NCBI GenBank assembly: GCA_002269645.1
Contig: NIVC01004195.1
Coordinates: 1 to 55,772, forward strand
Direction: 5' to 3'
DNA from: Macrostomum lignano
Taxonomy: Eukaryota
Length of the DNA stretch: 55,772 bases
Part shown: piece by piece, positions 11,187-23,353 of the stretch
How positions within the stretch are numbered: the stretch's first letter is position 1
Layout of the letters: each line of letters starts with the position of its first letter
The notes under the pieces: generated by a model
Told to the model about the DNA's origin: nothing
Databases searched by the model: none
Seen by the model: only the letters and a program-made list of their open reading frames with translations
Program-made: the position numbers and the translations under genes

Positions 11187-12119
11187 ATGCGCTCGTTGTT
11201 GCAGGCTGGGGCGCGTCAAAAAAAGAAAAAGCAGCAGAAGCGCCGCCCCGGCCAGCAGCTGCGGCATCGCCAGCTGCGGTCCCACAGCGGCCCGCCCGCC
11301 GGAGCGCCCAGCCGGCCGGCACCATGCGGCGACTTTCTCGGCCTGCCGTGGCGCGAGGAGGCGCAGCTGCGCAAGGCGCTCATCCTCAGCCTCCGCGACG
11401 GCCGGCCAGTGAGCCGCCGCACCGTGGAGCGCTCGATGGCCGCCGACGCCAACGCCACCCCTGCTGCTCCTACACCAGCCGCCGATCCACCAGCCGCCTC
11501 CGTGGCGTTGCGGGCCACTTCGATTGCTGCGCCAGCGGCGCCAAAATGCGCGACGCGCCAGCACTGCTCGCAGCCGCCACCGCCGGAGCTCCGCTTGGAC
11601 CCCCACACCGGCCGGCCCGTCTCCACCGTGGCCTTCCTCGACTTCCTCTGCTGCTATCGGGCCACAGCTGTAGCCGCCTCCGCCGCCGTGCCCGCTCGCC
11701 TACGCTGGCTCGCCTTGCCACCAAGCCTTCGTAGAATGAAGAAGCGACCGACTCTCCAGCAGCTGTCGGTGCCGCATGCACCGAGGCCGAGCCCCTTGGC
11801 CTCTGACCCGGAGACGCCCGGACCGCTGCAGCAGTGCCGGTCATCTCCGCAACCGCGCGAGCAGTCCAAAACTGTTAATGGTGCTGCTGACTGCCTTGAA
11901 TTCGGCAGGCACAGCGACAGCCAACTGCTGCACCAGCATCAGCAGGTGGCCGCTGCAACCAGAGCCAAACGTCGGGCTCTCGCAACGCTGCGAGCGGCGG
12001 CCGCCACCGCCGCTGCCGCTGTCAGTCACTCCGACTGCGATGAACGCGAGGAGCCGCAGCGGCCTTCTGAGGCGAGTCTCCAGTCGGAGCCGAGGCGCAG
12101 CCGGCGCCTTGCCGTCTGA
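11187..12119 (+). CDS. JARID2 N-terminal-like protein (UIM plus SUZ12-binding motif), ~305-310 aa, no JmjN/ARID/JmjC
   Basis: GLPWREEAQLRKALILSL (11340-11393) aligns with the JARID2 UIM GIPWSEERVVRKVLYLSL. AFLDFLCCYR..VPARL (from 11631) aligns with JARID2 DFLTFLCLRGSPALP. Both JARID2 motifs were recalled from memory. The start is either ATG 11187 or the acceptor at 11204. Confidence 0.72.
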   Translation: MRSLLQAGARQKKKKQQKRRPGQQLRHRQLRSHSGPPAGAPSRPAPCGDFLGLPWREEAQLRKALILSLRDGRPVSRRTVERSMAADANATPAAPTPAADPPAASVALRATSIAAPAAPKCATRQHCSQPPPPELRLDPHTGRPVSTVAFLDFLCCYRATAVAASAAVPARLRWLALPPSLRRMKKRPTLQQLSVPHAPRPSPLASDPETPGPLQQCRSSPQPREQSKTVNGAADCLEFGRHSDSQLLHQHQQVAAATRAKRRALATLRAAAATAAAAVSHSDCDEREEPQRPSEASLQSEPRRSRRLAV

Positions 12120-12126
12120 TCCCCTC

Positions 12127-12840
12127 TTAGACTGGCTCAGTTATCTTCTTGAGCTCGCATTGAGACCCGCTTAGACTGGCTCAGTTATCTTCTTGAGCTC
12201 GCATTGAGACCCGCTTAGACTGGCTCAGTTATCTTCTTGAGCTCGCATTTAGACCCGCTTAGACTGGCTCAGTTATCTTCTTGAGCTCGCATTGAGACCC
12301 GCTTAGACTGGCTCAGTTATCTTCTTGAGCTCGCATTGAGACCCGCTTAGACTGGCTCAGTTATCTTCTTGAGCTCGCATTTAGACCCGCTTAGACTGGC
12401 TCAGTTATCTTCTTGAGCTCGCATTGAGACCAGCTTAGACTGGCTCAGTTATCTTCTTGAGCTCGCATTGAGACCCGCTTAGACTGGCTCAGTTATCTTC
12501 TTGAGCTCGCATTGAGACCCGCTTAGACTGGCTCAGTTATCTTCTTGAGCTCGCATTTAGACCCGCTTAGACTGGCTCAGTTATCTTCTTGAGCTCGCAT
12601 TGAGACCCGCTTAGACTGGCTCAGTTATCTTCTTGAGCTCGCATTGAGACCAGCTTAGACTGGCTCAGTTATCTTCTTGAGCTCGCATTGAGACCCGCTT
12701 AGACTGGCTCAGTTATCTTCTTGAGCTCGCATTGAGACCCGCTTAGACTGATCAGTTAGCTTTCTGAGCTCGCATTGAGACCAGCTTAGACTGGCTCAGT
12801 TATCTTCTTGAGCTCGCATGGAGACCCGCTTAGACTGATC
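12127..12840. repeat. 44-nt minisatellite starting 8 nt after the stop of the JARID2-like ORF
   Basis: Unit TTAGACTGGCTCAGTTATCTTCTTGAGCTCGCATTGAGACCCGC, about 16 copies. Confidence 0.97.
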
Positions 12841-13526
12841 AGTTGTAAATGTTGAGTTTCCTCGCCACACTGTAGCATGATTCCCCCTGCCTGTCTCTCT
12901 TAGCCAATCATCTCGCACCGCCGCTGTTGATGAGCCACTTAATCCGAGATTATCTCGGCTGGTTCAGGTTTCTCCGATTCGCTCTCTGTCCATTGTTTGT
13001 TTCATCTGCTGTTTTTACTGTAGATATTGATTTTTATAGCCGGCTTTTACTTAAATGGCATATCGCGTGAACAGCACTGACTGTATGTTTCCACACTGCT
13101 AATCCACATTTATTCACTTTGGTTTCTTTAGTTACGATTTTCTGTGCTTCAGTTGGCATCTCATCATTTAACTGCTTTTACTGAAATTCTCTTTTTTATT
13201 TCAAGCAGAGCTGCTGCAACTTTTTCTGGCCTGCCGGAAATGCAAGTTTTGTAAAGACTGTTACCATGGTCGCAGACGCTTGTAAATAGGCCACTTTTTA
13301 ACTCGCATTCTGGCCAAATACACGCACTTAAGCCATTGTCGCTGACTGACTTTGCTAGCATTTGCACGGGTGTACTCGCTTTATTTTTCTTTATATGGCT
13401 TGGCAACGATTGGTTCCTCCCTCACTTTAGCTTCCAATGTAAGCACTACTTCATGGCTCAATGGTGCTTCAAAATTGAAATTCTTTCCACTTTCTCTCTA
13501 CCTCCCTTGCAAGCACTCTGGCATCG

Positions 13527-21398: not shown

Positions 21399-21992
21399 AA
21401 TTGGTAAAACACCGAGTCTCAATGGGAATTGGTGAAACACCGAGTCTCAATGGGAATTGGTGAAACACCGAGTCTCAATGGGAATTGGTGAAACACCGAG
21501 TCTCAATGGGAATTGGTGAAACACCGAGTCTTAATGGGAATTGGTGAAACACCGAGTCTCAATGGGAATTGGTGAAACACCGAGTCTCAATGGGAATTGG
21601 TGAAACACCGAGTCTCAATGGGAATTGGTGAAACACCGAGTCTCAATGGGAATTGGTAAAACACCGAGTCTCAATGGGAATTGGTGAAACACCGAGTCTC
21701 AATGGGAATTGGTAAAACACCGAGTCTCAATGGGAATTGGTGAAACACCGAGTCTCAATGGGAATTGGTGAAACACCGAGTCTCAATGGGAATTGGTGAA
21801 ACACCGAGTCTTAATGGGAATTGGTGAAACACCGACTCTCAATGGGAATTGGTGAAACACCGAGTCTCAATGGGAATTGGTGAAATACCGAGTCTTAATG
21901 GGAATTGGTGAAATACCGAGTCTCAATGGGAATTTGTAAAACACTGAGTCTCAATGGGAATTGGTGAAACACCGAGTCTCAATGGGAATTGG
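21399..21992. repeat. 28-nt minisatellite (GGTGAAACACCGAGTCTCAATGGGAATT) upstream of the second Rab gene
   Basis: About 21 copies. Confidence 0.97.
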
Positions 21993-22160
21993 TAGAAGGC
22001 CGTCTCTACGGGAATTAATAAAAAAGTTAAAGTCACATTAGCCGAGTTGGAATTTGAATTGTCAATTGCCAAGAACTCAGATAACCGTGCAGTGTATTTG
22101 CTTGCTGTCTGAAGTCCGGGAGCTGTCTGTCTGCAAGGCCCCAGGGGGCGAGCATTCCAG

Positions 22161-23353
22161 TCTAGCGGACAAGCCCCAGTCTTTGTGCCGCACTCTGCCC
22201 AATGCTTTGACAATTTGCCCAACCAGCGCCCGCAGTGCCGGCTGGCCAGCGTCAAAATTGTTGTCTTGGGCGATGCCGGCGTCGGCAAGACGGCCCTGCT
22301 GCACCGGCTGGTTCACAGCGGTTTCCATGGAGACGGTATCTATCGGGCCACCATCGGCTCGGACCTGCTGATGAAGCGGCTGGTGCTGAACTGCGGAGCC
22401 GAGGTGACGCTGCAGCTGTGGGACACGGCCGGGCAGGAGCGGTTCAGGTCGCTTAACCGCGCCTACTTCAGAGGGGCCGACGGCTGCGTGCTCGGTGCGG
22501 GCTCTTGTGCTGACATTTGCGCCTGAGTATTTGTTCTGGCAATGCATCATCAGTTCTGGCATGCAAGCCAGGCAAAATCATTGCGTATTGAAAGATGGGG
22601 TTGGGCCGTCCAAATTCTTCATTGTAAACCACTCGTGGGGGCTCATCATAGCCTCGACGGCGGCATCCGAATTGCGGGCCGTGTGCAAAACATTTACACA
22701 TGAAAACTAAACCTCTGGCTGCTACAGAATTTCTATATGAGTTGAAATTCGTGTCAGTAGTAGAAAAGCGTTGGTCTGCGATCGGATTGAAGTGGAGACT
22801 GTACGCCAGGCTTCCATCTTCAATGACATCGTCAGGGGATTCTGCCAACTCCACAGCTTCCCCTGAGGGGCCAGCACAGAGAATAAAGGCTGTGAACTTT
22901 TAAATCGGGTCTAAATAAAATGGATTGATCAATCAGATCGCCTGGCAGCTCCGCCCCGCTCCTTCCGCAGTGTTCGACCTGACCAGCACCGCCAGCCTCG
23001 CCTCCCTGACACACTGGCGCCAGGAATTCGACTCGGAACGGTCCGGGTTCGAATCCGCGGCCGCCTTGCCGCCGCTGCTGTTGCTGGGTAACAAGGCCGA
23101 CCTGCCCACGGGCAGCCGGGCGGTTTCCGGCCGATGCGTCGCCGCCTGGCGCAGCGCCCAGCAGCTGCCTAGCGGTGCCGAGCGCTACTTCGAGTGCTCT
23201 GCCAAGACTGGCCTGAATGTTGAGGCCGCCTTCCGCCACCTGGCCGCTGCCTGCCTGTCACGGAGGCGCCACCCGATGGAGGCCGGCCTGCGGCTCGCGC
23301 TGACTAACGGAACAGACGACAGCGCCTCCGGCTGCGTGTGCCGCCCAGCCTGA
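22161..23353 (+). CDS. Divergent Rab7-like paralog; exons ~22161-22494 and 22971-23353; no in-frame ATG upstream of the P-loop
   Basis: VKIVVLGDAGVGKT, YRATIGSDL, LWDTAGQERFRSL, LLGNKADL, FECSAKTGLNV. Same intron position and donor (G|GTGCGGG) as the neighbouring Rab7. In-frame TGA at 22110-22112 with no ATG before the P-loop. Confidence 0.8.

Follow-up and report, generated by a model that had tools for sequence, protein, structure and literature searches.

The spliced-leader AUG as a probable start codon for two genes in an operon-like run of Macrostomum lignano

Introduction

Initiation at an AUG carried by the spliced leader (SL) is already established in schistosomes and in Echinococcus. 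Macrostomum lignano belongs to the free-living flatworms, and the present analysis concerns one of its contigs, NIVC01004195.1 of assembly GCA_002269645.1 (Mlig_3_7), taken whole as a window of 55,772 bp in which window coordinates equal record coordinates. Two genes in this window probably receive their start codon from the leader and add to the known mechanism: an unnamed open reading frame (ORF), here called ORFX, and Rab-B, one of two Rab7-like paralogs (the other being Rab-A).

Among the closest described systems is that of S. mansoni, where 28% of trans-spliced cDNAs carry the SL AUG in frame (Cheng, Cohen, Ndegwa & Davis, J Biol Chem 2006) and over 40 cDNAs need it, both figures as cited in PMC9851317 and PMC12582326. 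As in M. lignano, an SL ending in AUG is joined in frame to ORFs that have no start of their own, and in both species a minority of trans-spliced genes depends on it. The systems differ in that S. mansoni is a schistosome studied by transfection and translation assays, whereas the present case is a free-living macrostomorphan with annotation-level evidence, both of its genes belonging to an SL-resolved polycistronic unit. For E. granulosus, taking the SL ATG as the start made 143 of 187 SL-bearing clusters full length by prediction, against three of seven fixed acceptors in frame in our window; some N-termini there fit their orthologs only with the SL AUG, and alternative genomic AUGs often stand within a few codons, as happens here in MetAP2 and ORFX (PMC3510090). 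A related idea underlies slORFs (slORFfinder, PMC9851317), in which the start codon is created by SL addition; that work deals mostly with near-cognate NUG codons, with nematode, Oikopleura and trypanosome SLs, and with ribosome footprints. The SL and operon papers on M. lignano itself (PMC5730564, PMC8629364) share with us the genome, the SL, the [T/C]TNCAG motif, the repeat-filled spacers and the TBONE units; the portions consulted contain no analysis of the SL-AUG reading frame or of genes that need the SL AUG.

Spliced leader and annotated 5′ ends

M. lignano has a single 35-nt SL, CGGTCTCTTACTGCGAAGACTCAATTTATTGCATG, and its trans-acceptors follow the motif [T/C]TNCAG, in operons whose spacers are swollen by repeats (PMC8629364). 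The 3′ portion of the leader (last 15 nt or more) reads ...CTCAATTTATTGCATG. A first-pass annotation of the window had taken the DNA to come from a flatworm with an SL ending in AUG, and indeed the published M. lignano SL ends ...ATTTATTGCATG. The terminal ATG is kept in two congeners and has been described for Macrostomum as a codon likely to start translation (PMC10468722). In the window itself neither scanning with Rfam nor searching for the SL sequence turned up any RNA gene, that of the SL included.

Annotated coding sequences (CDSs) can be used to locate the acceptors. TBONE splits transcriptional units at peaks of SL reads and at poly(A) sites, after which TransDecoder calls ORFs, running an ORF to the transcript 5′ end if no stop intervenes (PMC5730564). 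Since the ORF is extended to the transcript end, a 5′-partial CDS should place the mature mRNA's 5′ end to within two bases. We collected the annotated CDSs of the window and of two homeologs, NIVC01000581.1 and NIVC01001368.1. Ten of those collected for the contig belong to named genes, and seven of the ten start at a codon other than ATG (MetAP2, MIF, ORFX, RanGAP, Rab-A, SUZ12 and SCO1). Starts of 5′-partial CDSs fall 1-3 nt past an AG in RanGAP, Rab-A (three copies), MetAP2 (two copies), SCO1 and, on the homeolog, ORFX and Rab-B. For SCO1, a 5′-partial product from 54349 (P-MSSLLW) was predicted from the acceptor, and the exact protein was then found on the contig. A single fixed offset from acceptor to CDS start was tried and rejected: +1 fits seven boundaries and fails for SUZ12 and for the window copies of MIF and ORFX, which indicates that the annotated boundaries jitter.

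ORFX and Rab-B would open in frame with the leader AUG

The ORFX acceptor and its surroundings are as follows, with a slash marking the splice point and phase 0 meaning that the exon begins on the first base of a codon.

11196-11204, + strand: ORFX trans-splice acceptor TTGTTGCAG, exon start 11205, phase 0
11205-12119, + strand: ORFX coding exon; predicted SL-AUG product MAGARQKKKK..., 305 aa
11187-11189, + strand: in-frame genomic ATG, 18 nt 5′ of the acceptor, part of the outron if splicing is at 11204
11151-11160, + strand: alternative acceptor CACATTTCAG, exon start 11161, retaining ATG 11187 26 nt further 3′, phase 2

A CTAAT begins at 11179, 5′ of the acceptor. With the SL AUG joined at 11205, ORFX is in frame, meets no intervening stop and reads MAGARQKK...; the first in-frame ATG past the acceptor is 77 codons further 3′. 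The protein PAA80424.1 (Mlig003633g1, partial; NIVC01000581.1) begins GARQKKKK, one codon past TTGTTGCAG/GCT, and the other two copies begin 6 and 12 nt further 3′ on identical sequence. The first-pass annotation had pointed to this CTAAT, to the phase-0 acceptor at 11204 and to the MAGARQKK N-terminus, all of which agree with the PAA80424.1 start one codon later. Its view that ORFX depends on the SL AUG fits the SL-bounded transcript, but on sequence alone ORFX does have an ATG of its own, ATG 11187 having gone unmentioned; all three annotated copies exclude that ATG.

For Rab-B the corresponding features are these.

22110-22112, + strand: upstream stop TGA, in the Rab-B frame
22227-22235, + strand: Rab-B trans-splice acceptor CGCCCGCAG/TGC, exon start 22236, phase 0
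ending at 22226, + strand: second in-frame AG, CCAACCAG/CGC, exon start 22227, phase 0, less likely
22236-22494, + strand: Rab-B exon 1; predicted SL-AUG product MCRLASVKIVVLGDAGVGKT...
22495-22970, + strand: intron, GT..AG, matching the Rab-A intron 18724-19655 in position and phase
22971-23353, + strand: exon 2, including the stop codon

Here no in-frame ATG occurs from TGA 22110 to the P-loop (GDAGVGKT, 22269), and the first one, at 22371, lies 3′ of the P-loop. PAA80427.1 (Mlig003633g4, partial) begins RLASVKIVVLGD, one codon past the identical AG in the homeologous locus L003, and the acceptor sequence is identical across all three copies. The 35 nt 5′ of the annotated end contain just two AGs, each in phase 0. 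Starting from the SL AUG, the frame is open without a stop and reads MCRLASVK... (from 22236) or MRPQCRLASVK... (from 22227), and either predicted start gives a normal N-terminal length for a Rab. The first-pass annotation had rightly placed the TGA, noted the empty frame up to the P-loop and held that this gene needs the SL AUG, a view upheld by the 5′-partial CDS and by the absence of a genomic start. Its choice of acceptor, 22160, is corrected to 22235 (or, less likely, 22226), and its predicted N-terminus MSSGQAPV... gives way to the MCRLASVK... that follows from the annotated 5′ end.

Both genes are, judged by homeolog divergence, real coding genes under purifying selection. The ratio pN/pS between homeologs is 0.24 in ORFX (0.22 in RanGAP for comparison) and 0.18 over both exons of Rab-B. 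The Rab-B exons diverge by 1.4% and the intron by 4.6%, with 2 substitutions over the 259 nt of exon 1; the G-box motifs and both splice sites are intact, and the only indel between copies is in frame.

The genomic setting is that of an SL-resolved operon, with adjacent genes on the same strand, shared unit tags and SL acceptors on downstream genes. All recognisable conserved genes in the window lie on the + strand, in the order MetAP2, CCT zeta, MIF, ORFX, RanGAP, Rab-A, Rab-B, GST, Orai, SUZ12 and SCO1. ORFX, RanGAP, Rab-A and Rab-B are Mlig003633 g1-g4, a single transcriptional unit (PAA80424-80427 in the homeolog NIVC01000581.1), and tags of unit Mlig027011 (g1/g5, g3) belong to Orai and SCO1, on either side of SUZ12.

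We propose that this run would be transcribed as polycistronic precursors, from which trans-splicing of the 35-nt SL (...UUGCAUG) would release the mRNAs. The acceptors of ORFX (11204/11205) and Rab-B (22235/22236) would lie inside an open frame in phase 0. With phase-0 acceptors and no genomic in-frame AUG remaining before the conserved part, the terminal AUG of the SL would become codon 1, giving MAGARQKK... and MCRLASVK..., respectively. In MetAP2 the SL AUG would stand in frame six codons before the genomic ATG, while in RanGAP, Rab-A, SUZ12 and SCO1 it would be out of frame and ribosomes would have to pass over it, presumably through leaky scanning, its context (U at -3, C at +4) being weak. 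The predicted dependence of ORFX and Rab-B on the SL AUG is well supported. Initiation at the SL AUG itself is something we infer, with acceptor positions drawn indirectly from SL-bounded GenBank models. To the full proposition, that the SL AUG supplies the start codon of these two genes and that the acceptor phase of their neighbours is unconstrained, we assign a probability of roughly 0.65.

Several observations weigh against this proposition. First, annotated 5′ ends jitter between identical copies, with boundaries shifting by 0-35 nt: across the three copies they are 11208, 11214 and 11220 in ORFX, 14904, 14904 and 14910 in RanGAP, and 8747, 8750 and 8762 in MIF, the last all within the MIF CDS. 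All that a boundary tells us, then, is that the acceptor in use is there or further upstream. Second, Rab-B is annotated in one of three copies and is absent from the window annotation; on Rab-B the SL AUG would have a weak context (+4 U), with an out-of-frame AUG 37 nt later. Additionally, models from the older ML2 assembly begin Rab-B at FVPH or fuse it to Rab-A, and other Rab-B acceptors may be in use. Third, ATG 11187 of ORFX is conserved and in frame, and both homeolog substitutions between it and the acceptor are synonymous, so a second, self-initiated ORFX isoform may exist.

A possible start of ORFX at its own ATG

The last of these points can be taken further, with ORFX starting only at ATG 11187 (MRSLLQAGARQ...), trans-spliced at CACATTTCAG/T (11160) or starting further 5′, and with the annotated ends being truncated. 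The in-frame ATG is present in all copies, the upstream acceptor fits [T/C]TNCAG and would be in phase 2, the homeologs differ in codons 2-6 at two sites, both synonymous, and the MIF models demonstrate that annotated ends are imprecise. What counts more heavily is that all three annotated copies begin 3′ of both the ATG and 11204, the most upstream exactly one codon past the AG. Acceptor 11160 lies 41-59 nt 5′ of the annotated ends, beyond the offset of any other gene, and would require 5′ truncations of that size, the largest in the window. The 64 nt 5′ of the acceptor at 11204 diverge by 4.7% between homeologs, an intron-like rate. On this evidence an exclusive start at ATG 11187 is doubtful.

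ORFX had been labelled JARID2-like, a label that finds no support: the sequence matched no Pfam family, so none of the ARID, JmjN/JmjC or zinc-finger domains of JARID2, and, among PDB sequences, no JARID2 chain at E <= 10. A UIM-like stretch (EEAQLRKALILSL; 11330-11380) and FLDFLCC (11640-11670) are what we take to recall the JARID2 N-terminus, an unconfirmed likeness that Pfam and PDB do not support. SUZ12 is encoded on the same contig as ORFX.

Acceptor phase in the neighbouring genes

Annotated 5′ ends fix the acceptors of five further genes.

1190-1203, + strand: MetAP2 acceptor ...CTGCTTCAG, exon start 1204, 18 nt before ATG 1222, phase 0
14889-14902, + strand: RanGAP acceptor ...CCTGCCCTCAG, exon start 14903, 7 nt before ATG 14910, phase 1
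18351-18364, + strand: Rab-A acceptor ...CATTCTTCAG, exon start 18365, 97 nt before ATG 18462, phase 1
50509-50522, + strand: SUZ12 acceptors CCCAG/ and TTGCAG/, 8 and 2 nt before ATG 50525, both phase 2
54339-54346, + strand: SCO1 acceptor CACTGCAG, exon start 54347, 5 nt before ATG 54352, phase 2
1222, 4895, 8729, 14910, 18462, 24279, 48147, 50525 and 54352: the nine genomic ATGs

The MetAP2 CDS is annotated from 1207 in the window and from the same place in a homeolog, and the SL AUG would add MLAVPTT before its genomic Met. The RanGAP protein annotated on this contig is PAA48257.1, and the RanGAP model P0208 begins QFMSAAD. The Rab-A CDS starts at 18366 in all three copies, and the SUZ12 CDS starts at 50522, a position that does not coincide with an AG. 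Acceptor-to-ATG distances of 2 for CCT and 1 for Orai would be consistent with the annotation, which does not fix them. Counting ORFX and Rab-B, three of the seven fixed acceptors in the window are in frame.

The first-pass annotation had claimed that the nine genes with their own ATG are never in phase 0, that the genes other than ORFX and Rab-B avoid the frame of the SL AUG, and that phase is under selection, with acceptors held out of frame wherever the SL AUG would be only an upstream AUG. The first claim holds if the nearest CAG 5′ of the ATG is taken as the acceptor (0/9 in phase 0; (2/3)^9 = 0.026), and a C follows the candidate acceptor in eight of the nine genes, a weak +4 context. 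It gives way under other rules. The nearest AG of any kind puts one of nine in phase 0 (GST, distance 3), the nearest [T/C]TNCAG motif puts RanGAP there (distance 51), and the annotated MetAP2 acceptor (distance 18) is in phase 0 in two copies. We rejected the nearest-CAG rule as unreliable because the annotated Rab-A acceptor is 97 nt upstream of its ATG, contrary to the earlier placement close by. The annotation-fixed phases are 0, 1, 1, 2 and 2, and one in five in phase 0 is what chance would give, with n = 5-9 leaving no statistical power. The 28% in frame in S. mansoni is likewise near random, E. granulosus shows a strong in-frame excess, and neutral sorting could yield both classes of gene, an in-frame acceptor making the genomic ATG dispensable. 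Selection on the phase of the SL AUG is therefore unlikely, and the claim of avoidance does not survive.

In the out-of-frame genes the ORFs that begin at the SL AUG are 3-134 codons long and overlap the true start, so the SL AUG must be skipped there. Its context has U at -3, with C at +4 in the out-of-frame genes and G in ORFX, a sample too small to mean much.

Eight of the nine genomic start codons have a CAG followed by C 1-17 nt 5′ of them, the CAG of MetAP2 being followed by T. The form CAGC[CG]ATG occurs at four of the nine, and for Rab-A it is not the annotated acceptor. This CAG/C motif could serve as context for the start codon, or the sites could be secondary acceptors.

Less likely starts for Rab-B

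The acceptor first proposed for Rab-B is the following.

22153-22160, + strand: CATTCCAG, phase 0, no annotation support

Its phase was correctly read, 22161 being the first base of a codon. Trans-splicing here would still make Rab-B dependent on the SL AUG, with the product MSSGQAPV... and a 25-residue N-terminal extension. The site fits the motif as TTCCAG, the stretch 22083-22235 is nearly invariant between homeologs (1 substitution in 153 nt), and the ML2 model P0338 treats it as coding. These points are outweighed. The annotated 5′ end is 76-78 nt further 3′ (75 nt separate 22160 from 22235), the sole substitution in the stretch is non-synonymous, and the protein would have a longer N-terminus than Rabs usually do. 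That 22160 falls in phase 0 is unremarkable: every CAG (Gln) codon of the frame qualifies as a phase-0 'acceptor', and the 12 AGs in 22113-22250 divide 3/5/4 among the phases, 22160 being one of the three in phase 0. Outrons elsewhere in the run are equally conserved (0-1.3%), so conservation is no sign of coding, and we rejected it as coding evidence for 22083-22235. Use of 22160 is accordingly improbable.

It is more improbable still that Rab-B is translated without any AUG, as a decaying duplicate or from a non-AUG start. The lack of a genomic ATG, the missing annotation in two of three copies and a C-terminus of CVCRPA versus CQC in Rab-A would fit such a fate, yet pN/pS of 0.18, exons 3-4 times more conserved than the intron, intact G-box motifs and splice sites, and an only indel that is in frame all speak for a maintained protein. 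A Met from an upstream cis-spliced exon is very improbable: in-frame routes exist from ATG 21381 with its GTAAAA donor to TCTAG/C (exon start 22166) and from a ATGGGAATTG/GTGAAA unit of a 28-nt minisatellite to CCCCAG/TC (exon start 22180), the latter matched by ML2 model P0339, which begins FVPH just past 22179/22180, but the SL-bounded annotation is a 5′-partial CDS with no upstream exon, chance puts any donor-acceptor pair in frame one time in three, the donors sit in a variable minisatellite and the ML2 models at this locus are visibly chimeric.

Every copy of the 28-nt minisatellite unit 5′ of Rab-B has an ATG followed by a GT donor-like site. The UniProt models P0335, P0338 and P0340, from the older ML2 assembly (18366-23353), join Rab-A and Rab-B into one protein, to which one model adds RanGAP; they look like typical chimeric predictions across an operon.

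Implications for gene models

Returning to an SL AUG that supplies the start of ORFX and Rab-B, we conclude that at least two non-ATG CDSs on the contig, together with a third gene that is unannotated in the window copy, are probably complete proteins once the leader AUG is counted. The practical consequence is for M. lignano gene models, which should account for the leader AUG, as should ortholog N-termini and transgene designs. SL-AUG initiation would then reach from parasitic flatworms to an early-branching free-living one, in support of an old origin of the conserved terminal AUG. No new rule on phase selection is established.

A wider proposal is possible, though tentative: a substantial share of M. 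lignano trans-spliced genes, especially downstream operon genes, could be unable to start without the SL AUG, with many 'partial' GenBank CDSs being complete with the leader and with acceptor context tuned to use (+4 G) or skipping (+4 C). If true, leader-supplied initiation would be an ancestral, genome-wide flatworm feature and not a peculiarity of parasites.

Other features of the locus

Outrons 5′ of annotated SL acceptors show 0-1.3% homeolog substitutions, as compared with 3.4-4.6% in introns and 5.2% in the Rab-A 5′ untranslated region. This pattern suggests that they may hold constrained intercistronic processing signals.

1054-1203, 14847-14902, 18215-18364 and 22083-22235: conserved outrons

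All three GenBank models of MIF are 5′-partial and begin at residue 7, 8 or 12, omitting the intact Met-Pro encoded at 8729. These starts are most likely boundary jitter; a GAG/C site at 8748/8749 coincides with one of the boundaries.

8729-8762 region of the window, 8277 in homeologous locus L004 and 1732 in L006: annotated MIF starts

Two further gene models depart from the genome. MetAP2 is annotated here as a CDS at 1207-2552 of 249 aa, against 468 aa in the homeolog, and its conserved C-terminal exon (3351-3983) is intact in the window copy outside the annotated CDS; a protein search with this exon matched no M. lignano protein. The Rab-B exon and an exact look-up of full-length MIF likewise matched nothing from the species, these parts being unannotated or annotated differently. 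At about 15860-16000 in RanGAP, 45 residues (VMLAFF...KQPQ) that are open in the genome are missing from the GenBank protein, which suggests an in-frame intron, or an isoform that retains one.

Spacers between genes are 1-2 kb long and packed with minisatellites, matching the description for M. lignano, and the window exons have GC-rich third codon positions. A minisatellite, its unit 16-44 nt long, occurs in every intergenic gap from MIF to Rab-B.

10763-11140, 12122-12844, 13528-14846, 17189-17680 and 21399-21993: minisatellite-bearing gaps

Between MIF and ORFX lies an interstitial telomere-like (ACCCTA)n array of about 880 bp (9278-10156) with a higher-order period of 196 bp. An AT-rich stretch at 26-48 kb breaks the gene run; it holds an ORF with a GIY-YIG-like motif (31247-31792), probably a fragment of a Penelope-type element. 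An unnamed annotated call of 171 aa lies on the - strand at about 29048-29563.

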